A stretch of 64,000 bases of DNA from NCBI GenBank assembly GCA_946965045.2, contig OX337231.1, positions 2,418,001-2,482,000 on the forward strand, in the 5' to 3' direction. Both the position numbers and the translations under genes were made by a program. Shown one piece after another: positions 1 to 21,872 of this stretch. This DNA comes from Epithemia pelagica (lineage: Eukaryota; Protista; Bacillariophyta). The notes beneath the pieces are model-generated. The model saw only the letters and a program-made list of their open reading frames with translations, was not told the DNA's origin and made no database searches. Positions within the stretch are counted from its first letter, which is position 1; each line of letters begins with the position of its first letter.

Positions 1-98
1 AATTCGGAGGAACCCGACAATGGCAGCGTAGGTACGACGAGTGTGTGTGTCTTTTTCTCGTGGATCGATGCACCACGTGTTGATGTCTTGTGTCTCGT

Positions 99-635
99 TG
101 TGGTTTGTGGTCCGTTGCGCGCACCCGAGTCGTTGTGGGGGACCAACTGCGCACGCCCCAACCTTGGCGTGCTCGTAGGGGGAGACGGAACGCACAAGAT
201 ACAAGTCTAAACCCTAGCCTTATCAACGCTTTTAACCCCATTGCCAAAACTACATACATATACCTAGAGTTATATCGACGGCTCTCTCCATATCTTACAA
301 TATACTCAACCCCCTTTAGAGAATTCCGGAATGATGGATCCCTTTCAATGTTGTTGTCGTCCAGCCCAAGAGGAGACTCCTGTGGCGGGAGACTTTTTGG
401 TGGCGACTCGTTTGTTCTGTTTGGGTTTGTGCAACAAGGACAACCCCCTCTCATAGCTAGAGAGAAATGCTCGTTCTTGATCCGTCTACATCCGTGCCTG
501 CCTCTCTCCCTCGAGAGCAAGGAATGCGACTTGTGGTGGCACCATTAACATTGTTTGTCGCCTGGCCGTATTCGTGGTTCCTCGGGTTTGGGGGGAGTCC
601 TTCCTCTTCTTCCCCAATAAGAATCGACCACAAGC
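99..635. repeat. Direct repeat copy A (~535 bp), paralogous to 3175-3700
   Basis: Aligns by eye with 3175-3700 along its whole length. Near-identical blocks include TGGTCCGTTGCGCGCACCCGAGTCGTTG...TTGGCGTGCTCGTAGGGG and GATCCGTCTACATCCGTGCC...GGCACCATTAAC. Both copies end in AATAAGAATCGACCACAAGC, and the middle carries indels. Confidence 0.95.
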
Positions 636-715
636 TCGATCGGCACCTCTTTTTTGCCATGGCCTCGTACACCATATATACAGAAGGTTGCCCGTACGAA
701 CAATTCCCCTCGTTA

Positions 716-3151
716 TTATCCACCGAAAGTAATGCAAGAGATGTTTTTGCCCTTTGACCAAACTTGGCATCCGGTAAACTTCTCGTCGAATGCGACAACC
801 AGTCTAAATTCATCGTTATCCTTCGGTCTGAAGCCTGGTTTTCTGAAATCAACTATCCGAAAGTCTTGAATAGATGGAGTGAAGTATTTCCCTCTGTTTG
901 GTTGTCCTGGTCCCGTTGGTTCCAAAAACCTTTCCTTATGCTCTCTGAAGCTACTGCCCTCTCGCATCAGCTCGATCCCATAGTAGTAGTCACTGTTCAC
1001 ATAGAAATCAAGTTCGCCTTTTTTTCCATCTCCACGATCAGGCAGTACAGCACTCATTTCAGACACAACCTCGGTGCTAGCCGGAAGACATGATGTAAGA
1101 CCTTTGAAAAACATTTGTTGAAGTGAGCTCTCTTTGGGGAAACCACCGTCTGAAGCTTTGCAGCTCTGACACAGATCTACTCGTTTGAAAGTTTGCAAAG
1201 ATGCGAGAACAATGTCCAATATACTTTTGAAAGTGGTTCCGTCATCAGCTCGGTTTTGAAACAATGCGGAATACAGTCGTCTTGATGATAGCTTGAACGC
1301 AACTTGTTGCCTCATCTCAGCCCAAGTTTTTGACTTTATTTGTTGGTTCAAGTCTTGCACGAAGTAAACCTTTAGTAGCAACAGCACAAGATCGATACTG
1401 AGTTGCTTTGAATCGTCAATCATGGCATCTTGCAATTCCGTTCGCTGCTCATCTGAGAAATCATCACAATTCGGTGGCCAAATTCTGGTGTAGGTATGGT
1501 CCAAAAACTTCTTTGAAAGCAAAAAGGATATCATTGCCCCAGCATCCAGGTTCTTCCGCAACCTTGCAAATTCATCAAGTTTGTCCAGTGATACTTGTAA
1601 CGCAAACACGTGCCCCCCACACTGATCGGTTACGGCGTTGACTACCACGCACATTGACTTCTCGTCAAGTCTTTTCAGATCATCTTTCTCGTCCAGTAGG
1701 CCTGCGACAAAAACCTTTTCCTCCTCGGGCGTGAGGCGTAGGTCCTTAAACGAGATTACGGCATCAGTGGAGAGAATGGGGGAAGCGGGATCGCTAGCAC
1801 ATCGACGCGTCGTGGCTCCTACGATCCGTAACTTGTGATCTTTAAGAAATCGCCCGTTGACAAGTTGCTCCCAAAAATGGGATTCCACGTTTTGAATATC
1901 ATCGCAAAAAAGTAAACGCACTTGATTTTCAAACTGTTGGTCCATTTGGGATACAGCTTGCCTTAGTTGCTCGAGTGGGGGTTTATCTTTTTCCATGAAC
2001 GTGTAGGCCGTTACAGGCAGTGGGCCTCCTTTCGCATTGTTCTTGGCTGTGCGACAAAAGTGGTCGATGAGATTCATTAGGCTGGATTTACCGACACCAG
2101 CTGGTCCCTTCAGCAAAACAAGTTCGTGGCGCTCGATCAGATCCAAAACCTTCGCAACAAGATGATCTCTCTGAAGAGTCTTCTTGTCTTTTGGATCAAT
2201 TCCTTTGGTGTATCGCAGTGTCCGTTGCCTCCTTGGTTTATTTGGCATAATCGGACCCAGTGTGTACGTGCCGCCATCCACGAGGGATGCCTTGAATCCA
2301 TCTTCTAACCCATAACAACTAATCCACTCCTTGAGTAGCGTCTCCACAACAGCATCGTTTGACCCAAAGCGGAGCAGGAACTCTTCCATCGTCCACTCTC
2401 GGGCACCTCTCCATGTCAGGTTGCCGTATTCTGACCGGAATTTGGCTTCCACTAGCAAACGAAACTTGCCATTCTCACCGACAAGCGTCGACAAGTCTGT
2501 TTCATCATGTACTACTAGCGTATCAGTCATTTCTCGGTTGAAGATGAACCTTTGTCGTCCTTGATCTTTTCTTCTGCTGAGGATGTTTTTGTTATGGTTC
2601 GATTCCTGTGAATCATCGTTGGAAGCGGTGGCTTGGGAGGGTGACCAAGGAGAAAAGGGAGATTGGGTGCCTTGCGAGCTATCGCTACCACCAGACTTGG
2701 AAGGAGACCATGGCGAGAGGGATGATTTCCCTGAATCGGATCCGCCGGATGGTGGACCTGGCTCGTACGAAAACGTTGACTGGGAAGCCTCGCTGTCCGT
2801 GCTTGCTTCGGCCGACCCGTCTCCACTGCTTCCATTAATGTCCCCATTGGTACCACTGCTATCCTGCTCCGAGTCAGTGGTACTGCCACCGGAAGGTGAC
2901 CACTGTGAGAGTGGGTTTCCACCGCCACCACCTCCTCCTCCTCCACCGCCACCAGACGACCATGCTTTCTTGACCTGTGACGAGCCACCCGCCGGTGGAA
3001 TGGATGAACTTAGCACTAGACCTTCTTTGTGCCTGTTGTTGCCTTCCACTGGGCGACTTTTTGATCGACAAGTAAACGATTGGAAAAAGCCTCCAAATCC
3101 AGTGACCCTCGTTGGACTCGACGACAAGACCGCCAAAACGAAAATCCTCAT
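716..3151 (-). CDS. Crinkler/RHS (CR)-type protein: hydrophobic N-terminus, S/G-rich linker, header domain, P-loop NTPase, C-terminal restriction-endonuclease-fold domain (~811 aa, intronless)
   Basis: Long ORF; first likely ATG at 3151 (MRIFVLAVLSSSP). Walker A GPAGVGKSS and Walker B-like LLFCDDIQ. The C-terminal KESSLQQMFF / GELDFYV / YGIELMREG / EHKERF motifs resemble CR-REase nucleases. LVDGGTYTLGP precedes the NTPase, as in CR header domains. Confidence 0.75.
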   Translation of the reverse strand: MRIFVLAVLSSSPTRVTGFGGFFQSFTCRSKSRPVEGNNRHKEGLVLSSSIPPAGGSSQVKKAWSSGGGGGGGGGGGGNPLSQWSPSGGSTTDSEQDSSGTNGDINGSSGDGSAEASTDSEASQSTFSYEPGPPSGGSDSGKSSLSPWSPSKSGGSDSSQGTQSPFSPWSPSQATASNDDSQESNHNKNILSRRKDQGRQRFIFNREMTDTLVVHDETDLSTLVGENGKFRLLVEAKFRSEYGNLTWRGAREWTMEEFLLRFGSNDAVVETLLKEWISCYGLEDGFKASLVDGGTYTLGPIMPNKPRRQRTLRYTKGIDPKDKKTLQRDHLVAKVLDLIERHELVLLKGPAGVGKSSLMNLIDHFCRTAKNNAKGGPLPVTAYTFMEKDKPPLEQLRQAVSQMDQQFENQVRLLFCDDIQNVESHFWEQLVNGRFLKDHKLRIVGATTRRCASDPASPILSTDAVISFKDLRLTPEEEKVFVAGLLDEKDDLKRLDEKSMCVVVNAVTDQCGGHVFALQVSLDKLDEFARLRKNLDAGAMISFLLSKKFLDHTYTRIWPPNCDDFSDEQRTELQDAMIDDSKQLSIDLVLLLLKVYFVQDLNQQIKSKTWAEMRQQVAFKLSSRRLYSALFQNRADDGTTFKSILDIVLASLQTFKRVDLCQSCKASDGGFPKESSLQQMFFKGLTSCLPASTEVVSEMSAVLPDRGDGKKGELDFYVNSDYYYGIELMREGSSFREHKERFLEPTGPGQPNRGKYFTPSIQDFRIVDFRKPGFRPKDNDEFRLVVAFDEKFTGCQVWSKGKNISCITFGG

Positions 3152-3174
3152 GATGATGACCCCAATGTCGATCT

Positions 3175-3700
3175 TTGTGGTTTTGGTCCGTTGCGCGCAC
3201 CCGAGTCGTTGTAGGGGACCAACTGCGCACGCCCCAACCTTGGCGTGCTCGTAGGGGGCAGATACACTCCTATCCAAACCCTAACCTCATGAACGCTTGT
3301 AACCCCGTTGCCAAAACTACCTCTATACACCTTCCTACTACCTAGGTAGAGTCATATCGACAGCTCTCTACAATACTCATCCCAATTGCGAAATGCTGGA
3401 TCCCTTTCAATGTTGTTGCCGTCTAGCCCAGGAGGAGACTCTTGTGGCGGATGATGTTTTTGGTGGCAACTCGTTTGTTCCGCTTGGGTTTGTGCATCAA
3501 GGACAACCCCCTCTAATAGCTAGAAAGAAATTCTCGTTCTCTCGATCCGTCTACATCCGTGCCTGCCTCTCTCCCTCGAGAGCAAGGAATGCGACTTGTG
3601 GTGGCACCATTAACTTTGTTTGTCGCTTGACCGCATCTTTGGTTCCTCGGGTTTGAGGGGAGTCCTTCCCCTTCTTTTCCAATAAGAATCGACCACAAGC
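3175..3700. repeat. Direct repeat copy B (~525 bp); holds the last ~30 codons of the PTS-like gene and the intergenic region upstream of the CR gene
   Basis: Same alignment as copy A. The stop codon of the 3610..5730 gene lies inside this copy. Confidence 0.95.
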
Positions 3701-5730
3701 GTCGTGACAAAGGGAATGACAAAGGCCACACAACTGGCTTGCATCATGGCATACCAATGAGGACCTGCCACTACCACCGAGACAATCCAGGGCAAATAGG
3801 CCATACTGGCGGGTGGTTGTACGAAGAACAATGGTGGTACTACTGTCGTTGTTGTTGTTGTTGTTGTCGAGGAACCCAAACTGGTCCACACGGCCGAGGG
3901 TGTACACGCCATCATGGACGACAATGACGTTGTTGACGATGCAATACTGTGACTGTGAGTCCAGACCAAGACGGCACAGGACAAACCACTGGCCACATAT
4001 CCACTAACATTGATCCACCGGGATTCTTCCATGTATGGGTAACACACTTCGACAAAGTCACCAAACATTAGATTGATCCACAAGCCTCGTTGACACAAGG
4101 CTCGATCGGCGACTCTGGCGGCCTGGTTGTGGTGGTTCGTACTCGTACTAGACTGGCCCGCAGTCACGAGTACCTTGGCGGCACAAATACCGGCACAGAC
4201 CACGACCAGCGTCAATTCGTCCACGGCACCCAAAAAACTCGCCGTCGACCCTGGTTGTTCCAATTCCACGAGAATCAAGGGCAAGTGCACGGCATGGTAA
4301 TATCCCACCTTGGACGAGGCACACGACAAACAGCCCCACGCACCGGCGGCCACCAAGGGCGCATACCACACGCCGGTACACACGGCCGAATCTGTCACGG
4401 TCCAAGAAAGCACTCGTCGCAGCAACGCCGTACTCGATCGGGCCAGAGGTGTCACGGTACAGGCCATGAGACTGCCCACGAGACTGCCCCACCCTCCGGC
4501 GGCCAACAAGGTGGTCATGGTGGCGGGGACATTGGCCACGAGACTGGGAATCATGACCCAGGGTTCCATCCAGGCTTGAATCACATGACCTGCAATCAAC
4601 CCCGCCACAATGGAACCGCGGCACCCAATGGCACTGGCCACCGTGGCAGCCATGACTAAGGATGCCGTGGCGGATTCCTTGGACGTGCATGACGACGACA
4701 AGAGCGACGAGGAACTTGTCGTCGTCTTGGAGTTGGCGACTCGTGTGGCCATGAGAATGGCACAGACTGTCGGTAAGACAAAATGATTCAAGGTGGATTG
4801 GATCAAATCCAATTCTGCCGAAATGGATTCCCGCGTCACGGGAAGGTAGGACAAGAATGGAACCACGACCGTCGGGGGTTCTTGTTCCAATAACGTTTGC
4901 ACATTTTGTAGGAAAAAGCGAGACAGGGCCACGGCCCAAAATGCCGGCAAGGAGGCATTGAGCGTACTCGTCCACGATGCCGTAGATTCTGGTCCCGTGT
5001 TTCCGTCATTGTCGTCGTCCTGTTTTGTAGATGGTTTCCATGGCTTGTACAGATGGGTTCGTCCAAACGTTTGGGCCAGACTGTACGTATAGGACAAGGC
5101 CCGTGTTTGTGTCGTGGTGGCAATGGATCCCCCGGCATTGCCCACCAATCGGACTCCCAGAGCAGCGGCATGGGCCAGCGAGGATCCTCCACTGCCTGTG
5201 AGGGGAATCTTGGATTGAACGGCGGCATCCAACACGGATCGACACAAGGGCACATGCATGGAAATCCCAATCAAGGCATGAATCGTCCCCGTGCGAATCG
5301 CTCGCGCCAGTACAGTGTCCAACCACGGTTGGGCATACAACCGATTGATCCGATCCAATGTGTCCGTGGCCACGACTTGAATGTGCAAGACGTGGGTACC
5401 TACTGTCGTAGTGGTGGTGGTCGAATTCTTTGGGTCGTCCTGGTTGTCGTCGGTCGATTCGGTGAATGGTTGGAGCGTTGCCACAATCCATTGCGCCAGG
5501 TCCGTGTCGGCTCGGACGGAATCCATGGATTTGCCCTGCAACAAGGAAATGTACATGGCATGGACCAACCGTGCGCGAATCAAGGACAAGTGGTACTGAA
5601 TGGTCTGCAACAAGTGAGCCGCATGTTCCTGTCCCAGGGTTGCCAGGCCACCTCCCGAACTCCCCATCAAGGCCACATTGAGAATCGACAATGGTTCTTG
5701 GGTTTTGGTGGTTTCGCCGGGGTTTGCCAT
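3610..5730 (-). CDS. Multi-pass membrane protein resembling bacterial single-chain PTS EIIC-like sugar permeases, with an N-terminal soluble domain
   Basis: Intronless ORF with likely ATG at 5730. Motifs NVALMGSSGG, IPLTGSGGSS, TTTQTRALSY, GYYHAVHLPLILVELE...SFLGAVDELTLVVVCAGI and INLMFGDFVEVCYPYM match my recollection of a Firmicutes 'PTS sugar transporter' family. The C-terminal half has many hydrophobic segments. Confidence 0.6.
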   Translation of the reverse strand: MANPGETTKTQEPLSILNVALMGSSGGGLATLGQEHAAHLLQTIQYHLSLIRARLVHAMYISLLQGKSMDSVRADTDLAQWIVATLQPFTESTDDNQDDPKNSTTTTTTVGTHVLHIQVVATDTLDRINRLYAQPWLDTVLARAIRTGTIHALIGISMHVPLCRSVLDAAVQSKIPLTGSGGSSLAHAAALGVRLVGNAGGSIATTTQTRALSYTYSLAQTFGRTHLYKPWKPSTKQDDDNDGNTGPESTASWTSTLNASLPAFWAVALSRFFLQNVQTLLEQEPPTVVVPFLSYLPVTRESISAELDLIQSTLNHFVLPTVCAILMATRVANSKTTTSSSSLLSSSCTSKESATASLVMAATVASAIGCRGSIVAGLIAGHVIQAWMEPWVMIPSLVANVPATMTTLLAAGGWGSLVGSLMACTVTPLARSSTALLRRVLSWTVTDSAVCTGVWYAPLVAAGAWGCLSCASSKVGYYHAVHLPLILVELEQPGSTASFLGAVDELTLVVVCAGICAAKVLVTAGQSSTSTNHHNQAARVADRALCQRGLWINLMFGDFVEVCYPYMEESRWINVSGYVASGLSCAVLVWTHSHSIASSTTSLSSMMACTPSAVWTSLGSSTTTTTTTTVVPPLFFVQPPASMAYLPWIVSVVVAGPHWYAMMQASCVAFVIPFVTTLVVDSYWKRRGRTPLKPEEPKMRSSDKQS

Positions 5731-6016
5731 GGTTGTTGTGGTTCCCTGCAGCGCCAAAGCTGGAACGAGACGTTTTGATCTTGGCAGCCTCTCAAGAGTT
5801 CGTTTTGTTGGTCGGCACTTTGTCTTCCCGGTTCTCGAACCTTTGCTGTGGTTCCGAGTTCCGTGCACCCTTGATGTTGTGGGTTATGAGTTGTGAGGTA
5901 GCTTCGAGTCGCACATTGTTTGTGTGCATCTGTCGAAATCAGTCGCTCATCATTTCATGGATCGTTCCACAAAGAGTTTGGTTGTGTGGTTGTCTAGAGT
6001 ATTCTTGTGAAGGACC

Positions 6017-6868
6017 ATGTCAGCCTCCCCCAACGAAGAGGAAGCAAAGGAAATGAAGAAGCATGTAGAGGAAGAAGAAGGGGCAGAACGGGCAAAAGAC
6101 GGACTTGCCCAACGAAGACGGTTACCAGCAGCACCCGAACAACTCCCGACCAATGCCTCCACCAGCAGCACCACAACGTCCACGTCCCACGTGGATGCTC
6201 CTGGTTCGACTCCCCCAACCAAACAGGACGACGACGACGACACGATTCCACCAAGTACAGCAACGAATGATCATGAGAATGAGCAAAGGAATCGTTCCTG
6301 GGAAGATCGGATTCTGTTGGTTCGAAGGTATTATGAAGGTCAAGGATACCGTGTCCATTCGGGATTGCAATTTGGATGTGAACTCGTTTTGTATGCCGAT
6401 GATCCCAGTAAGGTTCATTCCGATTTTTGCGTCCATGTGGTTCCCGAAGGTACGATTAAAAAATCCCAAGAAGAATGACCTGAAAATTGAGACATCTGAC
6501 GACGTATTTTGATTTTGTCTATTTTCCATGGATAATGTGCTTACTTTTATGTACACATCACAGATGGCCTGTTGGATTGGCGCATGATGCAATCCTTGGT
6601 TCGATCCATGCCCGATTTGCACAAGACATTGATTTTGGCCAATCCTATTCTAGTGGAACCAGTCACGGATGAAACCACCAGCGGCAGCGCCACAACGGCA
6701 CTCCCCCAACTGGTACGGGTGGACGAATTGGCCTTTGCCACGGAACATGCACCCTTTCGTCATCGCAAAACACGAGGCGAAGTAGGATCGCAACGCAAAA
6801 GCAAAAAATCCAAACGGAACGAACAAGAACAACAACAGCAGCCAACTGCTGCAGCCGAAAACCCGTAA
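6017..6868 (+). CDS. tRNA-splicing endonuclease subunit (SEN2/SEN34-like), 2 exons
   Basis: YRVHSGLQFGCELVLYADDPSKVHSDFCV is the tRNA intron endonuclease catalytic signature. A GT-AG intron at 6450-6563 joins in frame to DGLLDWRMMQSLVR...KTLILA. Confidence 0.85.
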
Positions 6869-7965
6869 CATGAGAGCGTCCGTGCGGCACCGGTTCCTGC
6901 CCTGCTCTGTCGACTGTTGTACTCCAGTTACTACCTACCCGGTCCAAACTCGACGACTGCAACCGGCTCGGCTGTGAAACCAAACCATGGATTCTTCTTC
7001 CAGTGTTGGTGATGCCACCATGTCCAATCCTGTTCCCTTTCTTTTTCGGAAAGGACACACCAAGAACTGAACACACCCATGACATTCGTTCCAGTCCATG
7101 GCTACATGTTTTTAATCCACCAACACTCGACTATATTCCATGGCGATGGGTCCATCCAGCTTTGCTCTAGCTTTGAAACAGTACCGAAATGCCAACGAAA
7201 TTGCAAGCTACAAAAGAAATTGCAAGCTACCAAAGCAAGTCGATTCCAACATCCATGGTCCAATCCACTTCTGTGAAATTGTGAAAAGCACACGTGTTCG
7301 CTTGTGCCTCGGTTCATTCCCGCTACAATGTAGGAGGGGTACCAGCTCATAGGAACAGTTGCAGAGCTCCGCCACTCACTCGGATGAACCGTAGGTTGTA
7401 CAATCACAAAGGGTCAATTCTTTTTAAGAGAATTGGATGCCTCATGATATCTGTTACTTACGGCCAACTGGAACGTGCAATCCCCTTGTTGCTTTCGTCT
7501 ACTAGGTAGGAGTAGAGCTTTCCAAAATGGAGTTGTTGCAAGCTATGTGGGCGGCGTTCGTCTCTAGGAGTATACATAGGTACCTACTCCTACCTAGTTT
7601 GTTGGGCAATTGCCGAATGCCGAACTCACAAAAGATACCTTTCAAGGTTTGGCAAGATTTATATTATAATAGATATACAATAGAATTTTGTTGGTCGCAT
7701 ACCAGCCCCACCTACAAACTATCTGTCTCTTATTGGATCCGTATCTCCCCCACTCCGATGGGCATGGGGCAATACAAAAAACGGCGAGCAAAAAATGAGG
7801 CCACAAAGATCCAACAAAGAATTCACGCGATGTTGACCAAAAAAAAAAAGATATCGTTGTTCTCGGTGCTTCTTTGGCGCATTGTGAATCTCGACGCCTT
7901 GTTGGCCCTCCATTGGACTTGGGAAAACGAAAATAAATAGTCCACAGACACCACCACCACACACC

Positions 7966-10900
7966 ATGCCAATTGAAGTGGTGGAAGAGGTTGGCGGTGG
8001 CGTAGGCGTGTACGCCTCCGCCACGGATTTGACTCCGGAAGAAAAGGAGGAAAAACTCAAGGCGAAGATCAAGGAGCTCTTGGCTCTGTGTGCCGAGTAC
8101 GTGTTGGGTCAACAAGGTTTGACATGTTCGCGAGTCGCAAAGCTTGTCTTGTCTCATCGATCCGATTTTCACTATACAGAAATGAAGTGGATGTCCCCTT
8201 TCAGCTCAAAAAGGCTCTATTGGGCGACGAAGTCGAAGAGGGAGAAGCAGCCCGTCAACGCCATGTTTTGGTCGACGAATCGGAACGTGCCTCGTTGCGG
8301 GTTGACGAGCACCAGCTCATTAAGGATTTTCGTGCTAAGATGAGCGTCTTGCAAGGACAATTGCCCAATTTTGATTTGCGCATCGAAGATGGCTCCTATA
8401 CAGTCTTGATTCCCGATGTGGCCAATGATCCCTTGTATAAGAGTAGTCATTCGCTCGATGCCTCGCGACACAGCAGTGGCGGCGGTGCCACTCAAAACAT
8501 TGCCACAATTCGAAACACCAATCCTCTCTATGCCTTGGGATCCTCCTTGATTCGATGCTTTCGGGGAGGGGGTGACCCCAAAATACCCAAAAAGGAAAAA
8601 CAAATCATGAGTGGCGTCAACCTGGTCTTTGAACCTGGCAAAATGTATTTGGTGCTGTAAGTAGAAACCAGTGAAATCACCATGTCTTGTTGTTGGCCAA
8701 AGCAAGAACACATTCTCATCATGATGGGGTTTGCTTTGGAATCACAGTGGTGCGCCAGGATCTGGCAAGTCGACCTTGTTGAAAATGATTGCTCAGAAAC
8801 TAAACTTGGATGGTGGGTCCACAGAAGGTACGTGTCGGCAGAACCGTCTTTTCCATTGGCGAAAGAGAGTTTGTAAGTCTGTTTCTTGGACTAACGGGAC
8901 CGTCGTGAATATGTTTTGTTAGGTGGCAAGGTGAGCATCAATGGAGTGGCCAAGGACAAGGAGGTGATCTGGAACAACCTAGTAGGATACATTGATCAGA
9001 TTGACCGTCTTCATCCCTGGTTGACGGTATGGGAAACGTGCGAATTTGCCTTTCAATGTCGTAGTGGAGGAACGCACCGCCAACCATGGTATAACACATC
9101 GGAGGAGGCCAACAAACTCATTGAACAAATGGACGAAGAACGAACCTTGGTCACCAAGGTTTTGGAAGGTCTCGGTCTCACACGGGTCAAGGATACCTTT
9201 GTGGGAGATCCCAAAGTGGTCCGTGGTGTGAGTGGTGGAGAAAAGAAACGCGTGACACTCGCCGGTACGTAACAACACCAACAAGTGCATTTGACGCCTG
9301 CTGCTGTCTCATACGATATTTTGGATGTCGTCCTAGAAATGCTTTGTGGCAACTACCCGGTCTTGTGTTGTGATGAAATCAGTACTGGACTTGATGGTAC
9401 GTACCCCTTCTTGGTTTGTTATATCCATTCCAATGGTGTCCAACGACGATATGTCGTCAACCAATGAAAAACACCCTCTGTCTCTCACGCACACCTCTGC
9501 CTACTCGGTTTTCAGCGGCCACCACCTACGATATCACCAAGCTCATGGTTCAAGCTGCCAGGGTAAAACAATCCATTTCGGTTGTTTCCTTGCTTCAACC
9601 TCCTCCCGAAACGGTTGCGAATTTTGACGAGTTGATCTTGATTAGTGATGGAATGATTATTTACAGGTTGGTAGAATAGAGTCCGGGGAACCATTTTTGA
9701 AACGTTGTGCAAGGGAGGGCGACTCAGCAATTGTGTGCTTGTTTGTGCGTGTGTCTTTGTTATTAGTGGCCCTGTCGACGAAGTATTGGATCACTTTCAA
9801 TCCTATGGATATTTCCTTCCCGATCGAATGGATGTCGCAGGTACGTGATAAAACCTCTCTTGTTCATTGTCTTGGTTTGAATCTTTACAACTCAAGCGTC
9901 GGTTGATTGTGTGGGCACCCAGATTGGCTGCAGGTAAGCGAGATAATAACGAGTTGATGTGGAATCTGACAAGACACGTGACTCTGACCCTCCATCTGTT
10001 TGTTCAAATTGCACACAGACACTTCCCACACCGGATGGTGCAGCGTTTTTGAACGAGGCCAAAGACGCCCAGCTTTCCATGTCGGATCTCAAGACGAGAC
10101 ATTTAACCACAGAAGAATTCAGCCAAAAGTTTTACGAGTCAGACCGGGGACAGGAAATACTCGACAAGTTAAAGTCACCCTACAACGAAAAGGACGCCGA
10201 GTTTGTCCGTACCATTGCCAAAGCAAAGTTTGCCAACACCCAGCAGAGGTCCCTCGGTCTCGTGATGCGTAGAGAACTGTTGCTGTGGCGGCGAGACACC
10301 TATCAAATTCGCTCAAAGATTGGACGAAGTATGTATACACAGAATTTTGCATTTCTGGCCGTGTTAGAGATGCTTCATAAGATCTCACCATCCAATGTTG
10401 TCTGTGACAGATTTAATTTTGGCTCTTGTCGTGGGAACCCTCTTCTGGTCCGCTGATACGGACTCCATCATTGGTGTACTTTTTCAGTCCATGTTTATCA
10501 ACGTCTTGGGTAAGTTTCCGTTGCAATTGGATGACAATGTCGTTCACGGGATTTCTCACGCGTGTCATATTCGAAAGGTGCCATGCTTTTAATTGTCAAA
10601 CAGTTTCCAGCTCGTGCAGTCTTTTACAAACAACAGGATGCAAACTTCTTTCCGACATGGACTTATGTAATGGGTCGATACGTCGCCAACATTCCCAACT
10701 CGTTGATTGATTCGGTCATGTACGGAGTAATTGTTTACTGGTTTGTGGGTCTGGCATTTGGTAACGGAGCGACAATTGGACCGTTTTTCATGTTTCTCTT
10801 GATTCTTTTCATGACGTCGACAGCATGCGGTCTGATTTTTGGAATGTTCCCGGCAATTGTAAGTGGTCGCATCGAGTCCGGTATGTCAGGTTAACGTTCC

Positions 10901-14354: not shown

Positions 14355-14994
14355 GGAATCTGTTCCGCTTCGTTTGGCATGTGCCAATCCGGGCTGTGCC
14401 GTGTCGAAATCGGAACGACGGCATGCAAATAGGTATCCGTCACTTGTACGATCCGGACCGTCGGCAGGGATTGGACGACTTGGACGAGGGACTGCCAGGC
14501 CATTTGCGGATTGCTCGTTTCCGTCAAGTACGACCACGGGGGACTGTATCAGGCCGGATTGCGAATGGCGGACGTACTCACACCATTTTCCGTTGCCGCA
14601 ATCGACGACAAGGGACGGGTCGTCATTGTCGTCGTATCGGGCGTGGGGGTGGGAAGCAATTCTCCAAAACAGGAAACGGTCGTTTTGCTAGGATCGGACC
14701 GTGCATCCCTTGCGACCGGCCGATGTGGCAAAGTCTGTATCGGCCGCCCACGACGATGGAGTGGGCATCAAGAGGGAAACGGTCGTACCAACCACACCCA
14801 CCCACAAACAGGATCGTCGATCACAAGAAACAGGGGATTTCAAGGCGCTTGGCGGTGATGGAACTTGTGGTTTTTCGGGGGCCAATCCTTCCAGTCTGCA
14901 CGGTAATAGAACAAAAAGAAGCAGTGTTTTGGTGAAGGGCATTCGAATCGTCGTCGTCATGGTTAATGTAGAAGATGGATTGGCATGTGGATGG
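14355..14994 (-). pseudogene. Degenerate partial duplicate of the DUF1499-like gene at 22848-23970
   Basis: High identity to 22848-23970. Carries a 5-nt deletion frameshift near 14701, a CGA>TGA nonsense codon (PAR>PA*) near 14550, and an internal deletion of roughly 480 bp near 14405 that removes the 3' part of the CDS. Confidence 0.9.
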
Positions 14995-15050
14995 ACATAG
15001 AGGTCAACTATACTCCTATGTCATTGCGTTACCAGGCCATGATAAAGGAC

Positions 15051-15214
15051 TGTTGAGATACCGTGCAGACAGCGTCAATTCATTGATGAGGAAAAATTAT
15101 AAGTTATCGTGTTCGTCTAACTACATCGGCCCAGGTCACTGTCTTTTTGGTGCTGCGGCCAGTGTCATTGAGTCACGTGTTTCTCCGCGCCGGGCGACAT
15201 CCGCTTTCCCAATA
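15051..15214 (-). repeat. 3' LTR (164 bp)
   Basis: Matches 21711-21872 except for a 2-bp insertion (TTTTT vs TTT) and a TA rather than TG start on the element strand. Confidence 0.97.
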
Positions 15215-18200
15215 CCCCCCTGGTTCGGTATCACAGGAACGACAAGATCACGAAGCACGAGAAAGTGGGTGTCATCACGGTGTTCCTTCGTCAAGAGATC
15301 TGCAGGGTTAGTCTTTCCAGGGATATGGTGGACAGTCACTTCACCGGCCGCGATCGCGTCACGTACTGCGACCTGTCGCATGTTGAGGTGACGGAGACGC
15401 TTGGTGATGGCCCCAGTCCCACTCCAATCAACTGTCCCCTTATTGTCGTTGTAAATAGGGATAGGTTGCGATACATCAGACAGACCCATTTCTTCCATTA
15501 GGTAGGTGATATGTTGGCCTTCCTTAATAATCAAATCAATCGATTTGATTTCCGCTTCACAGGAACTGCGGCTACAGCGTTCCTCTCGTTCGACCTTCCA
15601 CCAGATAGGTCCGCCAGTACGCATCATCAAGGCACCTTGTACAGACTTACACTCGTCGTCGGTGACAGTGCGTGTTTCGATTTCCTCTGGCAACGGACGT
15701 GAGGCGTCTTGTGGTCCCCAGTTGGAATCTGTAAAGTCGCAAGTCTGATCGTGGTCTGGTGGAGAAACGTTGTGGGGCCACGCGACGAAGCCATGAAGTT
15801 GGCTGTCATCAGACCGTTCGACAAAGCATAGGCCACGTTCAGACGTACCGCGGATATATCGTAGTACGTGTTTTCCTGCTTCCATATGCTCCGGAGACGG
15901 ATTACTCATATGTCGACTGAGCAGTTTGTGGGCCACGGCGATGTCAGGCCGTGTACTAATTGTCAGCCAGGTGAGTCCGCCAATAAGCGATCGGTACTGC
16001 TTGACTAACTCCGAATTGGGATCGGCTGCCGTAGTAGGTGTAGGCAGACGATCGATAGGCAAGCCTGACCGATATGGTGTTTTGGCGGCGTTGCAATCTT
16101 GCATGTTGAACTTCTCGAGGAATCGCTCCACGAATCCAGGCTGAGAAATATGAACGCCCATCCCATTATTCTTGGTCTTGAACCATTGGTACCGGCATCC
16201 GAGGAAGTAGGTAACTGCGCCCATGAAATCGACCGTCAGCAGTTTGCCCAAAGACTCCTCGAACCACTTCTCAGTTTTGTCCGATGCGCTAAAATAGATG
16301 AAGTCATCGACGTAGACACCAACGTAGACTGGGGCTTCGTCCTCAAAAGGTTTACCCACTAAGACACATGGGTCATTAGCGCACTGTGTGAATCCCAAAT
16401 CATTGACAAGGACAGCAATAAACTTATCGTACCAATGTCGTGGGCTACGACGAAGCCCGTATAATGTTTTCTTCAATTTCCAATACGTTCCCGGCTCACT
16501 GATAGGGCATCCGCGTGGTGGTTCGCATATCACGACTTCATCCTCGGGCAGTTCCGGTTGACAGAACGCATTCTTGCAGTCGCCTTGCTTAGCTATCTTG
16601 CCGTGCTGTATGGCAAGAGATATAAGTAAGCGGCAACTGGTTGATTGTAGTACCGGCGCATACCGTTCCGAGTTCGACCATATACGTTCCTCCAAGTTTC
16701 CCAGCACAACTATGCGACTCTTGGCTCGATACGGGTTTCCAAGTTCATCTGGCTTTACCGTAAATATATTCATTGTAGGTATGGCCTTGAATCCTTGGGC
16801 CCTGTAGCGCGCATATTCTGCACCACTAATCACATCAAACACATCCATGGTCTTGAGACTGCCATGTTCCTCGGAGTAAGCGTCCCCCCATACAATTTGA
16901 TCGGTTGGATGTAGCTTAGGGAGATGAAGAAGGCAACTGGGAGCGCACTTCGAGATCAATTTGGCTGCGGACACGAATCGTCCGACCAGTTGGGGTGCAC
17001 CGGGGTTGGCGGGCCATCCCACTTGTAAGGTGCCCTCTCGTAATCGCTCCAAGTAGGTTTGGAGTAGATCCGGGAGCGGGATGATCGGTCGTTGATTGTT
17101 GTTCTGTTTGGCACGGGCGACAAATTCCCAATCACCGTCAGAATCCTGCCGTAATCGGCCGTGAAGGAACCCATGTACGTCCGAATAGAGGGTCACGGCC
17201 TCGTCAGCTCGTATCCACGACGGACGGAGTGGATGGTCGGCCGTGATATCAGAAACATGGTCGGCATCAGCAGTTTCGGTCGAGTGAAGGGGGCTGTCTC
17301 CTTTGAGGGGTAGGACCCCCCACACCATATCCGGATCGACTTCCACGGTGGTGTTGTCTGGCGTCTGTAGACTGTAACTAGGAGTCTGACTCGTAGGAAC
17401 TTGAAGGACGACGCCAGAGTGTCGGTCAGTAGAGCCTGGAGAGCTCCAGTACACCGAGGATCCAGGAGGATGCAGAACCTTGGCCTCAGTACGATCCAAT
17501 AAAGATAGTTGGAGCCCCCCATCGTACACGAGCGAAGGGAAGGCATCTGAGACACCACGGTCCACATCCAGAGTGTAGTCACTGGAAACGGAGAACGAGT
17601 GTTGGTCGGGGTTGTAAAAGACCACACCATTACAAAAGTCACTGCGACCCAGAGCAATACCGACAAAACTATGGGATTCGAAAGTGCGACGTTGCCGAGG
17701 ACCATCAGTCGGACGATTGAAGTAACCGATGGCGCCGAACTCAAAGAGAACCCGGTAGTCAGGTCGCTGGCCGTAAAATAAAGTGAGGGGAGTAGTCCAT
17801 TCTCCCGGGGACTCCTTCTCGGTGGAGAGCGACTGGACCGGCAGGAGATTCATCCGTTGGAAGGCAGTGCGCAATGCCCAAAACCAAAACCGAGCAGGAA
17901 GTTTAGCCTCGGCAAGGTAGGAGCGTGCCATACGGACACCAGTCCGCCAATACCGTTCCACGAGACCGTTGGAGGATTGGCGACGAGGTGCCGCAGAGCG
18001 GACACGAATTCGGAGACTGCGGAGAAACCGAGCAACGCCGCCACCCAGGAACCGACTGTCAAAGTCACACTGGATGACCTTGGGCATACCGCCCGCGTCC
18101 ACTATAAAACGCCAGAGAGCATCTTGAATGTCAGCGTGGCCGAGACTCCGTAGGCCATAACAAAACACCATGCGAGTGGCCGAGTCGACGAGGGTGAGAC

Positions 18201-21200
18201 AATAGTTGTACCCCCCGGGGGAGGTCCCATTGCCGTAGCCGATATCCATACCCACTAACTCCAACTTGTGGGCCCGACGACGTTGAGAGGGACCACGACG
18301 GCGCTGGTCAACTGTAACAAAATCACCAGCAGTAGCCGTAGGTTCCTGAGCCAACGTGACGGAAATGCCACGGCCCACATCGCCAAGTAAAGAGTATTCC
18401 TTGAGATTCCGATTGCCGAACAAACGGTGAAGAGCGAATGGAGTGACGCGGCGAGTCTCTCGAGAACCAGTGTCAGCGGTGTAGCAAGGTGGGAGAGAAC
18501 AATCGGTCGTGGACGTGGGTTGGTTGGTGGACGGAGAAGAAGGTGCATTGGCCGACGACGCCGGCAATGGAGATTCTCCGGTTGATTGAGACATAGAACG
18601 CGTTTGCATGCGGCGGAGCATGTTTTGTGCTCGACCATAGAGAACGCTGCCATTGGTATCGCTATAGACGGGAGTCTGGCTGGGCTCCACACACGGGGTG
18701 GCATCAATCAAGGCATCATCGGTATCGTCGACGTGGAGGACGAAGGTCGGGAAGGTCAAGTACATGCCATCATCATCGGCAATAAAGCTACAACCACTCC
18801 CTCGACGTCGATGTACACGAATGGATAGAAGATGCACATCCAACGTGGGAACGTGTAAGCAGTCCGCAAGTCGAACGTGATGCCCATCGAGACACACATT
18901 CACGGTACCACGACCCTCAATGGCCACGCGACTACCGTCACCCATTTCCACGTAATGATCGGTGAGCGGGGTGTAGGTGGCATCATCGAATAAAGAACGG
19001 TCCCAAAACATATCTGCCGTGGCCCCAGAGTCTGGGCAAACCAATGGTCGCGAACTCACAGCTGTAGGACTCCAACTACGACGACATGTAGGGGAAGATA
19101 GCTCGTTTAAATCACTTATGTCTAGCTCTCCTTCCTCAGGGGATGACTCTCTCAGATGTAGATAGGATGGGACGTCGCCGTCGCTACTGGTGCCATCGGT
19201 GAACGACGAAGAGTAGGACCAGATATCGGAATCATCACTCAGATCCTGTGTGGGAGAGAGAGAGGGTCGGTGAGTAGGAGAGCTAGCGTGATTGCTTGAG
19301 GCTTGATACGAGCACTTACGTCCAGGAGTAGGACTGGGACTGTCTTGAAGAGGGGACTCAGGGACACGACGGGCGGCCGCAGCGGTAGGAGTCGACGGCG
19401 GAATCGACGAGGAGTCGCCAGCGGAGGCGCGACGACCACGACCACTATTGGGGAAGGAGGAAGGTTTCCCGTCAGGGTTGAGGACACGGTCTTGTTCATA
19501 ATCATACTGAATGGTGAATCCGCACTCCTTCAGAATGGGGCATTTGGCAGTGGAATGTATGCCAGGAGCATGTTTCCGATTCCCCTTTCGATAAATCTTG
19601 CAGAGGAGGCACTTGAAGTCACGGTGATTTTGACGAGCGTCATCAGGACTGAGAGTGGCACCCACGGTGGTGAAGCCATCCGAACCAGGAGACTCTTGAA
19701 CTCGGCGACCCGTGGCAGCACCCACAGGGGCCTTCCCCTCAACCACGTCCATGGTAGACCGGTTCTTATAGCACTTTTCCCGAAACTCCTGGTGCATCAT
19801 CATGAACAGGTCTTGGGTGGTGATGGTAGCTAGGTCAATACGTCCACACTTGAGTTCTTCTTCTATCGTACCCATGGCGTGGCCATAGGGCCCCTTGATA
19901 ACCAAATAGTAGAGACGGGTACGGAACTGGAAGTCTGTCATAGTGTAGGAGTGAGTACTGAGTCTGTGACGCGCTTCCTTGGCCCGCCGATAAAACGTTG
20001 TAAGTTCCTCCTTGTTACGGTGACTGAGGCGGCTCCAAGTATCGAAGTCGTGCAAGAACGAACTAGTGGTCGTGGGATATGCAATTGCGCGAAGAGACGC
20101 AAGAAGCTTGATGCCGTTGCCATAGTCGTCAGTGGATCGAAGTTCCGACAAGACTCCGAGCGCAACAGGGTTGCGATGGACCTGGATGGAAATCACCAAA
20201 TGATAATGAAGGTGACTGGAAATTTCTCGATCGCGGGCGTTGTCTGGGGTGTCAGTATGAGAAGTAATGTCACTCCCATCAGAGAGCAACCAATGACCCA
20301 TGTGCACAATGTTGCGAACCGCCTCGTAGAAGACGTCAAACAATTCGCCGGTAAAAGCCGTGGCAGGGAATTCCGGAAATCCCTTTTGTTCCCGACGAAG
20401 TTTCCCATCGTTGGCCTCAATGGTACGTGGCTGCTCTTCCCCACGAGTGGATGCGGGAGTATTGACCACAGGAGCTGGATCCCCCCCGGACGCAACACGA
20501 GACGGGGCCGAGAAGTAAGAGTCCTGTAAACGGCGGACAACCTCGTCGACCGTAGCCGAGGGAAGAGAGGAAGAGCGAAGAGACGATGCGACCTGAGCGG
20601 GGAGAGACGAGGGAGGAACAACCGGACCACGAACAAAAGGAACCGAAGGTGGAGGAGGGAAGGGACCAGTGGGAGAGGATTGGTGGGAAGGGTCCCAACC
20701 AAGGAATCGCACGGCAGCTTGGTAGGTGCTGGCACTGGCAAATTCGGCACCATGCCCTGAGACGGCCTTAAAATCAATGGTACGTACCCAAGCCGCAGCC
20801 CAAGAGGTGAAAATGCCCGGATTCCACCCAGTCTTGACCACATAAAAGCGTTTCTGGGACCGTTGTTGACTACGATCCGGACCAACATAACCTCGTAGAT
20901 AGGGATGGCCAATACCTTCATAGGAGTCCTGAACGACGACTGCCTGAGGAGGGACGGAAGTACTAGTGCGAGCGTAGACAAGAAGGTCCGTCGGCCCCAA
21001 GGTTAAACCAGAGGGAATAGGACAGTTGGACAAAGGGCTGGAGAAACTCACATCAGGGACGGACTCCACACTGGTGTCAGAGCCAAAGGATGCAGTGAGT
21101 GGTGAAGGGGCAGTGGGAGCAGGCGCCGTGATGAGGTGTGGTGGAGGTGACTGGGCCTCTGGGAGGGTCCCATCAGTCATGTCATACGCAGCATCTTCTG

Positions 21201-21639
21201 CAGCTTCAATAGTGTCCACAAGGTACGAACTACGGTTGGTGGATCGGATAACGGATTGGTCGCCACCCGCAAGAATAACGGCTTGAGTGTAGGGACTGTA
21301 AACGCTGAGAGGGTCTTCATCGGCCGCGATAGGCGAGTACGTAGGTGGGGAAGGACCACTAGGTGCAGGATCCGGACGGACCCGAGGTCGTTCACTGGTT
21401 GTATTGGAGTCGACGGTCTCCACAGTGACTGGGTGAACAGCATTCGCTAGTTCTTCTTGTAGGGTTTCAATGTTACGTCCAACAACGGAGGTGCGAAGAT
21501 CCGACGATTGAGGGCTTGTAGGGACAGTGGTACCCTGCCATCCATTGAGGATGCGTTGAAATGGGGTACGGCGAAGTAAATTACCAAACGGAGTAGTGTG
21601 TCCTGGGGGATCCTCGTTGGATCGACCCGAGGTTGTCAT
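15136..21639 (-). CDS. Copia gag-pol polyprotein (2167 aa)
   Basis: Zn-knuckle-like CLLC...HSTAKC; protease CPDSGAT; integrase MDIG / QCDFDSRF / SNGLVER; RT RAKSRIVVLG, DCKNAF, YVDD; RNase H TDSNWG, SSCEAEI, DNKG, NPADLLTK. No internal stops. Confidence 0.97.
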   Translation of the reverse strand: MTTSGRSNEDPPGHTTPFGNLLRRTPFQRILNGWQGTTVPTSPQSSDLRTSVVGRNIETLQEELANAVHPVTVETVDSNTTSERPRVRPDPAPSGPSPPTYSPIAADEDPLSVYSPYTQAVILAGGDQSVIRSTNRSSYLVDTIEAAEDAAYDMTDGTLPEAQSPPPHLITAPAPTAPSPLTASFGSDTSVESVPDVSFSSPLSNCPIPSGLTLGPTDLLVYARTSTSVPPQAVVVQDSYEGIGHPYLRGYVGPDRSQQRSQKRFYVVKTGWNPGIFTSWAAAWVRTIDFKAVSGHGAEFASASTYQAAVRFLGWDPSHQSSPTGPFPPPPSVPFVRGPVVPPSSLPAQVASSLRSSSLPSATVDEVVRRLQDSYFSAPSRVASGGDPAPVVNTPASTRGEEQPRTIEANDGKLRREQKGFPEFPATAFTGELFDVFYEAVRNIVHMGHWLLSDGSDITSHTDTPDNARDREISSHLHYHLVISIQVHRNPVALGVLSELRSTDDYGNGIKLLASLRAIAYPTTTSSFLHDFDTWSRLSHRNKEELTTFYRRAKEARHRLSTHSYTMTDFQFRTRLYYLVIKGPYGHAMGTIEEELKCGRIDLATITTQDLFMMMHQEFREKCYKNRSTMDVVEGKAPVGAATGRRVQESPGSDGFTTVGATLSPDDARQNHRDFKCLLCKIYRKGNRKHAPGIHSTAKCPILKECGFTIQYDYEQDRVLNPDGKPSSFPNSGRGRRASAGDSSSIPPSTPTAAAARRVPESPLQDSPSPTPGRKCSYQASSNHASSPTHRPSLSPTQDLSDDSDIWSYSSSFTDGTSSDGDVPSYLHLRESSPEEGELDISDLNELSSPTCRRSWSPTAVSSRPLVCPDSGATADMFWDRSLFDDATYTPLTDHYVEMGDGSRVAIEGRGTVNVCLDGHHVRLADCLHVPTLDVHLLSIRVHRRRGSGCSFIADDDGMYLTFPTFVLHVDDTDDALIDATPCVEPSQTPVYSDTNGSVLYGRAQNMLRRMQTRSMSQSTGESPLPASSANAPSSPSTNQPTSTTDCSLPPCYTADTGSRETRRVTPFALHRLFGNRNLKEYSLLGDVGRGISVTLAQEPTATAGDFVTVDQRRRGPSQRRRAHKLELVGMDIGYGNGTSPGGYNYCLTLVDSATRMVFCYGLRSLGHADIQDALWRFIVDAGGMPKVIQCDFDSRFLGGGVARFLRSLRIRVRSAAPRRQSSNGLVERYWRTGVRMARSYLAEAKLPARFWFWALRTAFQRMNLLPVQSLSTEKESPGEWTTPLTLFYGQRPDYRVLFEFGAIGYFNRPTDGPRQRRTFESHSFVGIALGRSDFCNGVVFYNPDQHSFSVSSDYTLDVDRGVSDAFPSLVYDGGLQLSLLDRTEAKVLHPPGSSVYWSSPGSTDRHSGVVLQVPTSQTPSYSLQTPDNTTVEVDPDMVWGVLPLKGDSPLHSTETADADHVSDITADHPLRPSWIRADEAVTLYSDVHGFLHGRLRQDSDGDWEFVARAKQNNNQRPIIPLPDLLQTYLERLREGTLQVGWPANPGAPQLVGRFVSAAKLISKCAPSCLLHLPKLHPTDQIVWGDAYSEEHGSLKTMDVFDVISGAEYARYRAQGFKAIPTMNIFTVKPDELGNPYRAKSRIVVLGNLEERIWSNSERYAPVLQSTSCRLLISLAIQHGKIAKQGDCKNAFCQPELPEDEVVICEPPRGCPISEPGTYWKLKKTLYGLRRSPRHWYDKFIAVLVNDLGFTQCANDPCVLVGKPFEDEAPVYVGVYVDDFIYFSASDKTEKWFEESLGKLLTVDFMGAVTYFLGCRYQWFKTKNNGMGVHISQPGFVERFLEKFNMQDCNAAKTPYRSGLPIDRLPTPTTAADPNSELVKQYRSLIGGLTWLTISTRPDIAVAHKLLSRHMSNPSPEHMEAGKHVLRYIRGTSERGLCFVERSDDSQLHGFVAWPHNVSPPDHDQTCDFTDSNWGPQDASRPLPEEIETRTVTDDECKSVQGALMMRTGGPIWWKVEREERCSRSSCEAEIKSIDLIIKEGQHITYLMEEMGLSDVSQPIPIYNDNKGTVDWSGTGAITKRLRHLNMRQVAVRDAIAAGEVTVHHIPGKTNPADLLTKEHRDDTHFLVLRDLVVPVIPNQGGIGKADVARRGETRDSMTLAAAPKRQ

Positions 21640-21692
21640 GATGGGCTATTACCCACCACAGGGACGTTGCCCGCCGTGTAGGAAGCAATCGA

Positions 21693-21710
21693 CAGTTGGG
21701 CTCAATAACC
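21693..21710 (-). promoter_or_regulatory. Primer-binding site GGTTATTGAGCCC (internal/half tRNA-iMet type)
   Basis: Directly follows the ...CAACA end of the 5' LTR and resembles the GGTTATGGGCCC-type PBS of copia elements primed by tRNA-Met fragments. Confidence 0.6.
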
Positions 21711-21872
21711 TGTTGAGATACCGTGCAGACAGCGTCAATTCATTGATGAGGAAAAATTATAAGTTATCGTGTTCGTCTAACTACATCGGCCCAGGTCACT
21801 GTCTTTGGTGCTGCGGCCAGTGTCATTGAGTCACGTGTTTCTCCGCGCCGGGCGACATCCGCTTTCCCAACA
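21711..21872 (-). repeat. 5' LTR (162 bp), TG...CA termini
   Basis: Reads TGTTGGGAAAG...ATCTCAACA on the minus strand with terminal TGTTG/CAACA inverted ends, and is flanked by the TSD. Confidence 0.97.

Follow-up and report, generated by a model that had tools for sequence, protein, structure and literature searches.

A predicted NTPase-nuclease gene of the diatom Epithemia pelagica in a probable insert bracketed by duplicated host DNA

The DNA analysed here, called the window throughout, is a stretch of 64,000 bases from the Epithemia pelagica assembly GCA_946965045.2 (60.5 Mb in 23 contigs), comprising bases 2418001-2482000 of contig 4 (OX337231.1; C4 in coordinates below). Its subject is an intronless gene near the left end, on the minus strand, which is predicted to encode a P-loop nucleoside triphosphatase (NTPase) followed by a domain of restriction-endonuclease (REase) fold. 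The gene lies in an insert of ~2.5 kb that is bracketed by two diverged copies of the same host DNA, the insert is a mosaic with pieces related to other places in the genome, and two further members of the gene family are flanked in the same way by other pieces of host DNA. We lean, a little beyond an even balance, towards insertion of gene-sized DNA during host break repair, with a long duplication of the target, as the origin of this arrangement.

Direct repeats and proposed insertion site

A repeat search of the window returned five collinear direct-repeat blocks (105-635 versus 3181-3700, 83-97% identity, spacing 3062-3076). Their limits were refined by MAFFT alignment and inspection of the junctions, with which blastn agreed, to 93-635 (copy A) and 3173-3700 (copy B). 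Copies A and B are 89.3% identical over 513 aligned positions and differ by 55 substitutions and 8 indel events (Kimura two-parameter distance, K2P, 0.117). The open reading frame (ORF) between them begins with an ATG at 3151, ends with a TAA at 716-718 and contains 811 codons and no internal stops. A preliminary description, drawn from the letters of this DNA, had placed an intronless ORF wholly between two diverged direct repeats and had taken it for an insert bracketed by duplicated host DNA; the refined limits bear out both statements. Features of the locus, in the order of the forward strand, are as follows.

1-92, minus strand: proximal DNA upstream of the left neighbour (an MFS transporter gene), outside the duplication
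93-635: direct repeat copy A; 545-635 are the decayed last 30 codons and stop of the permease-like gene, 93-544 are a copy of intergenic DNA
636-715, minus strand: 3' end of the insert, 80 bases past the stop codon, with a six-A run and a CGATCG palindrome at the junction
716-1234, minus strand: predicted C-terminal domain of restriction-endonuclease fold, amino acids (aa) 640-811 (AlphaFold2, AF2, model and VIA-align)
1235-2254, minus strand: predicted P-loop NTPase of AAA+/STAND type with helical domains, aa 300-639 (AF2 model and Foldseek)
1888-2584, minus strand: segment shared, at ~96% identity, with a frameshifted 0.69-kb fragment at C4:3036238-3036917
2585-2596, minus strand: junction or filler of ~10-12 bases between the two borrowed segments
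2597-3172, minus strand: segment of 576 bp copied from the 5' end of an ORF on contig 2 (source C2:3593593-3594172)
3173-3700: direct repeat copy B; 3610-3700 hold the functional end (last 30 codons and stop) of the permease-like gene, 3173-3609 are intergenic
3610-5730, within ORF 3610-5868, minus strand: upstream neighbour, a multi-pass membrane protein (permease-like, labelled PTS-EIIC-like)

As the preliminary description also held, the repeat is made of the 3' tail of the neighbouring gene together with intergenic DNA, and the tail in copy A is degenerate. The permease-like tail in copy B reads LVVDSYWKRRGRTPLKPEEPKMRSSDKQS and the decayed tail in copy A reads LVVDSYWGRRGRTPPKPEEPRIRPGDKQC, each followed by a stop codon, the two stops being in register. 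Read along the minus strand, the order is the permease-like gene, copy B, the insert (3172 to 636), copy A, ~120 bp of proximal spacer and the MFS gene, a layout that fits insertion with a target duplication of 0.54 kb.

The duplicated spacer is the distal ~437 bp, and the intergenic part of copy B (3173-3609) now stands directly upstream of the inserted gene. An earlier suggestion that the gene had gained a copy of a host promoter holds in so far as this distal spacer was duplicated, but the ~120 bp adjoining the MFS start were not, and at one of the other loci described below (L035) the duplicated DNA is flanked by two genes that converge on it; capture of a promoter is therefore not general.

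Searching the whole assembly with window 1-3800 yielded no further copy of the ~0.54-kb repeat, and the block is therefore locus-specific. A dispersed repeat was ruled out, since the block occurs at this locus alone and contains a host coding tail.

Composition of the insert

The 5' part of the insert, window 3172-2597, matches the 5' end of a contig 2 ORF rich in Ser and Gly at ~96-97% identity. That ORF (L003, C2:3592093-3595672) is an open frame of 1733 codons with a signal-peptide-like start, many 180-base tandem units rich in Ser, Gly and Pro, and no Pfam match. The segment in the window holds 21 bases of leader, the ATG at 3151, the signal-peptide-like start with a deletion of 12 bases and one Ser/Gly-rich unit, and is fused in frame to the sequence that follows. 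Contig 2 is taken as the donor because the Ser/Gly unit is tandemly repeated many times inside its ORF; the window gene received a copy of a sub-gene fragment while this donor persists intact.

The next segment (1888-2584) starts at an acceptor-like TCCTCAG, holds the N-terminal domain (aa ~190-299) and Met208, and stops just past Walker B. In the related fragment at C4:3.036 Mb, similarity to the family likewise ends after Walker B. Nothing in the assembly is closely related to the remainder of the gene (1888-716), for which the best paralogue is 58% identical in protein sequence. A protein from another assembly (P0001) is 98% identical to that of the window and starts at Met208 of the window ORF. 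From this start, and from the TCCTCAG at which the shared unit begins, the native protein may be a core of 604 residues to which the in-frame fusion of 811 codons is secondary.

Synonymous (dS) and nonsynonymous (dN) divergence are 0.061 and 0.024 for the contig 2 segment and 0.026 and 0.031 for the segment shared with C4:3.036 Mb, with an overall value of ~0.03 in either case. The flanking repeats, at 0.117, are 3 to 4 times more diverged, from which the remodelling of the gene, or a later gene conversion, would be younger than the duplication of the flanks. The C4:3.036 Mb fragment was ruled out as the original donor of the gene, as it ends inside the NTPase domain and is 3-4 times less diverged than the flanks.

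Other members of the gene family

Protein and profile searches located ~18 full or near-full family loci in the assembly, plus fragments and remoter relatives that contain the NTPase only. Members are 20-60% identical to one another, and a tree of the C-terminal 240 residues has two deep clades, with the three genes that lie between direct repeats in separate lineages. For the comparison of flanks, at least 1.5 kb was taken on each side of 16 paralogues and each locus was compared with itself. The same scar was found at two of 17 other family loci (L035 and L043), each with a different, locus-specific piece of host DNA, and self-comparison of the other 15 gave no comparable flanking repeats. 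The idea that paralogues are flanked by long repeats specific to their loci is thus correct for two of the 17, with repeats of ~0.7 kb (92.8% identity) at L035 and ~0.4 kb (~64-71%) at L043, and finds no support at the rest in the flanks compared.

Locus L035 (C4:751001-759000) has its gene on the minus strand, at 5362-3885, with one stop codon inside. Its repeats (~2867-3563 and 5598-6305) retain their 92.8% identity over 685 positions (K2P 0.075). The upstream copy holds the last ~102 codons of a proteasome beta-subunit gene, including the stretch that matches Pfam best, and the downstream copy has a 10-base deletion in the proteasome coding tail. The 5' junction has a 10-base microhomology. 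The next gene on the side of the downstream copy is convergent, so the duplicated DNA there is not a promoter.

At L043 (C6:3006671-3010372) the gene runs from 2247 to 701, also on the minus strand, and has two stop codons inside. The repeats, ~150-575 and 2948-3310, have 70.8% identity over 171 bases by blastn (E 2e-13), ~64% in a wider alignment and a K2P of ~0.5; the start codon of a gene for an Arf-family GTPase marks the end of the upstream copy.

Insert sizes at the three loci are ~2.0, 2.4 and 2.5 kb and the duplications vary in length from 0.36 to 0.7 kb. Two of the three sandwiched genes (L035 and L043) are broken by stop codons. The separate lineages, together with the three different pieces of host DNA, mark these as independent events, each of a different age. 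The assembly contains no donor copy for any of these genes, the best paralogues of two of them being 58% and 52% identical in protein sequence.

Several other observations were made at family loci. An inverted paralogue of the L035 proteasome beta-subunit gene lies 14 kb from L035 (C4:737927-739642, 93% over 1.7 kb), and its homology stops no more than 40-80 bases from where the L035 sandwich repeat ends. L035 1240-1350 (C4:752240-752350) is a dispersed repeat, ~110 bases in length, of which at least 30 copies (73-96% identity) are spread over many contigs. The copy at L035 overlaps an ORF of 485 codons at the latter's start, and the repeat may represent a miniature element or else a leader or promoter module held in common. 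A 63-base block at L035 1162-1224 recurs in the leader of the L035 sandwiched gene (5476-5538). A stretch of at least 2.86 kb, made up of the gene plus at least 1.4 kb downstream, is 99% identical between family members L044 (C4:1040679-1045019) and L045 (C4:1211311-1215660), which lie 170 kb from each other and in inverted orientation; this homology starts 41 bases inside the ORF, and the N-termini of the two proteins (504 and 597 aa) differ, a second example of a header swap in the family.

Outside the genome, two word-index protein searches returned 24 relatives. The sequence of one (P0006) is the same as that of the paralogue ORF at C4:520 kb. Another (P0014; EukProt, Didymoeca costata), found in the transcriptome of a choanoflagellate, is an 874-aa relative extended at the N-terminus by a long additional region; its gene may truly belong to the choanoflagellate or may derive from prey or contamination.

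Mobile-element hallmarks and background frequency

No terminal inverted repeats were found at the ends of the window insert, no shared non-coding ends among 14 family members, and no transposase, recombinase, integrase or reverse transcriptase domain by Pfam in the window protein and the relatives tested. The assembly contains no near-identical copies of the sandwiched genes, the locus has no tRNA or Rfam feature, and no poly(A) tail is present at the 3' junction, where a single six-A run lies 13 bases inside. The earlier view of the gene as a mobile or selfish unit of undescribed type finds no backing in the missing inverted repeats, shared ends, transposase and near-identical copies, nor in the broken state of two of the three sandwiched genes.

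Known element classes were also considered. A class II DNA transposon was ruled out by the lack of terminal inverted repeats, transposase and close copies and by the variable length of the duplications (0.36-0.7 kb). A long terminal repeat (LTR) retrotransposon was ruled out because the repeats are host DNA of this locus only and carry the coding tail of a neighbour, and because reverse transcriptase and integrase are missing. Family genes have a G+C of 0.45-0.53 and a third-position G+C (GC3) of 0.44-0.61, inside the range of neighbouring host genes, and on this host-like composition a foreign or viral origin was ruled out. Both inserts, that of the window and that of L035, have the hexamer CGATCG at their 3' junction or within ~8 bases of it (636-641 and ~3572-3577, respectively); as a candidate shared end it was dropped, such a coincidence having a chance of ~1 in ten.

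As a control, non-tandem direct-repeat pairs of at least 100 bases with a spacing of 1-4.4 kb were sought in ~79 kb of non-family DNA (the rest of the window, L006 and L007). This gave 0 comparable pairs in ~18 equivalent frames, against two of 17 family loci (Fisher p ~0.2, a hand estimate).

Domains of the encoded protein

The P-loop NTPase was recognised by motif and by predicted structure. Walker A (GPAGVGKS, 2084-2107, aa 349-356) and Walker B (LLFCDD, 1898-1915, aa 413-418) are both present, and in the family alignment the G and K of Walker A are invariant and the acidic position of Walker B is kept. Pfam P-loop matches (nSTAND1, AAA_16, AAA_14) were all weak and below gathering scores. 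An AF2 model of aa 300-811, built on 23 sequences, reached a mean predicted local distance difference test (pLDDT) score of 83.8 and matched NLR resistosomes, CED-4, RuvB, ORC and RFC in Foldseek (E 5e-7 to 4e-5). The protein is accordingly predicted to carry a P-loop NTPase of the AAA+/STAND class with Walker A, Walker B and helical domains.

For the C-terminal domain, the AF2 model of aa 640-811 (pLDDT 88.6) gave weak matches of PD-(D/E)xK type in Foldseek. In VIA-align against 48,161 chains, nearly all of the top ~40 matches were PD-(D/E)xK nucleases (Z 5-7.6, 94-134 residues aligned), among them OkrAI, BglII, BamHI, BstYI, NucC, McrC, Bax1 and Card1. Single Z values are middling, and the fold was assigned from the consistency of this list and from the invariant acidic residues; the domain is modelled as a restriction-endonuclease fold with an alpha-beta-beta-beta-alpha-beta core. 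The pairing of NTPase and REase fold, read earlier from the translation, agrees with both structural searches. Residues conserved in the family are E673 (PKE), E694, D715 (ELDFY), E727 (IELM), H738, K755 and D768, and D715 and E727 are invariant in 25 sequences. The canonical lysine is missing, the residue two after E727 being M or L; the nearly invariant K755, or H738, might stand in for it in what is a predicted nuclease.

The gene had also been called a Crinkler, a name that fits the C-terminal NTPase-REase architecture and does not fit the N-terminus, where the defining header is absent. PF20147, the Crinkler header, was not matched by the whole protein at E up to 0.1, nor at E up to 1 by aa 188-306 or by relatives P0004, P0011 and P0014, and reading of the translation revealed no LxLFLAK or HVLVxxP motif. 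In language-model features the protein scores 0.96 against a cluster from Mucoromycota that bears the name 'Crinkler family protein', a lead that is feature-based only; none of the 24 relatives, all unnamed or misnamed, is an alignment-based match to a named Crinkler protein. The first 21 residues are signal-peptide-like by appearance. Four codons of the hydrophobic core have been lost relative to the contig 2 source, and the borrowed start may be unused.

Neighbouring genes and other repeats

The left neighbour is an MFS transporter gene of 1046 codons on the same strand (Pfam MFS_1, E 6.8e-33), whose first ATG lies ~30 bases left of window base 1 (ORF 5830-9204, minus strand, first Met at 8970 of L007, the 9 kb of DNA directly left of the window). 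These 9 kb contain no repeat family. With a transporter and no Crinkler-type paralogue on this side, and without a repeat family there, a tandem array of paralogues sharing upstream DNA, a possibility raised in the preliminary description, was ruled out. The permease-like protein on the other side, the 3' tail of whose gene is the duplicated part, has no Pfam match.

Elsewhere in the window, 14410-14992 and 23366-23972 form a 0.6-kb direct repeat (96% identity, K2P 0.041). The second copy is part of the coding sequence of a DUF1499 gene (23037-24005, minus strand) and the first is a stray internal fragment 9 kb away, 58 bases from a copia LTR. The 3' end of the DUF1499 gene lies between the copies, and the repeat is therefore a gene-fragment duplication and not a target-site duplication. 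Both here and at the proteasome paralogue described above, host DNA has been duplicated near family loci without a family gene being involved.

Window 15050-21870 is a Ty1/copia LTR retrotransposon. Its 163-base LTRs (15050-15212 and 21710-21870) share 98.8% identity, and its gag-pol ORF, intact over 2167 codons on the minus strand, has RVT_2, rve and Pol_BBD domains. It is a true LTR element, in contrast to the sandwiched gene, whose repeats are host DNA. Window 50548-51944 is a tandem array (period ~390 bases, ~3.5 copies, 75-83% identity), and 31045-31364 and 36919-37206 form a direct repeat of 73% identity at a spacing of 5874.

Explanations for the sandwiched genes

In the explanation we favour, a host repair or replication event would have placed ~2.5 kb of DNA with a single gene, a member of a ~18-locus family that gains and loses copies, between the permease-like gene and the MFS gene, without the gene's own protein taking part. 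About 0.54 kb of target (the last 30 permease codons, the stop and ~440 bp of spacer) would have been duplicated on both sides, and both neighbours would thereby have kept complete copies of the DNA they need. Such a duplication could have formed from widely staggered breaks to which the foreign piece was joined before fill-in, or from a template-switching tract that left the target, copied DNA elsewhere and re-entered upstream of its exit point. In a compact genome an insertion might survive only if it duplicated enough target to spare both neighbours, and selection against insertions that harm neighbours would then leave survivors with long duplications. Later, the 5' end of the gene would have been overwritten by the 576-bp start of the contig 2 repeat-protein gene, which would have supplied the in-frame, signal-peptide-like extension. 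The repeat and its host origin, the mosaic build of the insert, the scars at two further family loci, the predicted folds and the missing transposon features are observations; that DNA was inserted with a duplication, by repair and in this order, is what we infer.

Among the observations that argue for host repair are the recurrence with different host DNA, the separate lineages of the three sandwiched genes, the transporter in place of a paralogue on the left, the copying of fragments at the window gene, the 10-base microhomology at L035, the host duplications nearby, the missing inverted repeats and shared ends, the host-like G+C and the precedent in Arabidopsis. Taken together, the three loci look like a recurrent way of inserting genes with a long target duplication. 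Several points weigh against it. Its main weakness is that no donor of the three sandwiched genes is present in the assembly, and copy-and-paste should leave a donor unless this was later lost. The flanks are 3-4 times more diverged than the borrowed segments, so that several events must be assumed. Insertion with duplication is the most economical account of the locus, short of proof. Finally, the enrichment of scars over background is not significant, the control being too small.

A different origin, which we consider unlikely, is that the gene is an autonomous or semi-autonomous mobile unit, its own nuclease making wide cuts, with the NTPase perhaps positioning it, and cut-and-paste followed by fill-in leaving duplications of variable length, from tens of bases to kilobases. 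The missing donors are what cut-and-paste predicts; the scar is carried by three of 18 family loci, the insert sizes are similar (~2.0, 2.4 and 2.5 kb), and the predicted REase fold is paired with an AAA+/STAND NTPase and counts McrC among its matches. The insert ends speak otherwise, with no terminal inverted repeats and no conserved non-coding ends among 14 members, as does the protein, which has no recombinase or transposase domain. Near-identical copies are missing and members are 20-60% identical, as in an old gene family; two of the three sandwiched copies carry stop codons; the window insert includes an unrelated piece of contig 2 whose donor is intact; and the small control showed no significant enrichment. 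Slightly more doubtful again is the specific proposition that the nuclease-bearing Crinkler-type genes of this diatom are self-mobilising single-gene elements without terminal repeats, whose nuclease opens the target at two distant points. If true, each such insertion would duplicate tens to thousands of host bases and so spare the neighbours, a mode of transposition undescribed so far, and the genes would give the proposed origin of Crinkler toxin modules from transposons a living link.

There may instead have been no insertion with duplication at all: either the gene is old here and the 0.54-kb block reached its far side later, through tandem duplication of block plus gene with subsequent loss of the second gene, or the gene came to lie within a pre-existing tandem duplication. 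Near L035 the same block has been duplicated further, and this, with the gene-fragment copy at window 14410-14992, which is unrelated to any insertion, gives the idea some substance. It would need two precise events at each of three independent loci, however, and the 9 kb left of copy A (L007) hold no trace of a second gene copy; we regard it as improbable.

Somewhat lower still do we place integration of a circle that carried the gene and a stretch homologous to the target, where a single crossover would leave the homology on both sides. The A-insert-A arrangement is the exact product of such a crossover, and the model has been published for transposed plant genes (PMC2869330). Here the repeat is single-locus host DNA with no second source of homology, and each of the three sandwiches has its own locus-specific DNA.

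Retroposition of an intronless mRNA by a long interspersed nuclear element (LINE)-type mechanism, with an unusually long target-site duplication, would account for the intronless ORF and for the sharp 5' end of the unit shared with C4:3.036 Mb, but is very improbable given the six-A run 13 bases inside a 3' junction that has no poly(A) tail, a parent gene not present in the assembly, a C4:3.036 Mb fragment truncated at its 3' and not its 5' end, and an insert that contains the leader piece of another gene.

Relation to known systems and significance

In Arabidopsis, genes that have transposed often lie between direct repeats of which the orthologous target site has a single copy (Woodhouse, Pedersen and Freeling 2010; PMC2869330). 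The comparison was between Arabidopsis thaliana and A. lyrata, fast-turnover families were especially affected, and similar findings in Drosophila were cited (PMC2869330). Repeats of at least 15 bp were screened and the automated search covered 30-400 bp; the authors favoured circle integration and also mentioned long target duplication, leaving the mechanism unsettled (PMC2869330). The window gene is, as in the cases of Woodhouse et al. 2010, a non-transposon gene bracketed by host-derived direct repeats. It shares with them an ordinary single gene as cargo, membership of a fast-turnover family, repeats of mostly genic host DNA and a lack of transposon ends; it differs in the length of the repeats (0.36-0.7 kb), the diatom host and the nuclease cargo. 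It probably adds a diatom, and a family of nuclease-ATPases, to the known cases in which a transposed gene is flanked by repeats derived from its target. Since the cargo family encodes a predicted nuclease, self-mobilisation keeps a small probability.

Favoured repair-based insertion has its own precedents. Templated insertions, and tandem duplications that carry extra sequence at their junction, arise by polymerase theta end joining or by microhomology-mediated break-induced replication and fork stalling and template switching (MMBIR/FoSTeS), and the inserted fragments are usually tens to hundreds of bases long. Pieces copied from other chromosomes with intact donors, filler and microhomology, and a target duplicated round the insert all recall such events; the insertion of a whole gene and the missing donor of the main gene body do not.

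Crinkler effectors of oomycetes, chytrids and Mucoromycota have modular C-termini, such as a P-loop NTPase plus REase, and exchange of the N-terminus by recombination is on record for those of Phytophthora. In 2016 Zhang et al. are said to have proposed that Crinkler modules, the NTPase and REase combination included, derive from transposons. The window gene resembles Crinklers in its predicted C-terminal P-loop NTPase and REase module and in an N-terminus exchanged by recombination; unlike them it has no header, belongs to a free-living alga and took its signal-peptide-like start from another gene. Bacterial AAA_35 and AAA-ATPase_like proteins with PD-(D/E)xK domains (PF14516, PF09820, PF13366) have the same length (~500-530 aa) and the same order of ATPase then nuclease. 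Their language-model feature scores are 0.94-0.96, a likeness that is feature-based, and the diatom protein has no significant Pfam match to PF14516, PF09820 or PF13366.

How ordinary genes move to new sites is still unsettled, the Arabidopsis data being undecided between circle integration and long target duplication. In Epithemia pelagica one family shows the scar at several ages (K2P 0.075, 0.117 and ~0.5) in an assembly of 23 contigs, and these ages, combined with copy-and-paste from intact donors at the same genes, could make the mechanism tractable. The nuclease family, if it drove its own insertion, would count as a mobile element of a new kind. At this locus a gene for a nuclease-ATPase has gained a secretion-type N-terminus from an unrelated gene, in the way that header swaps build Crinkler effectors in pathogens.

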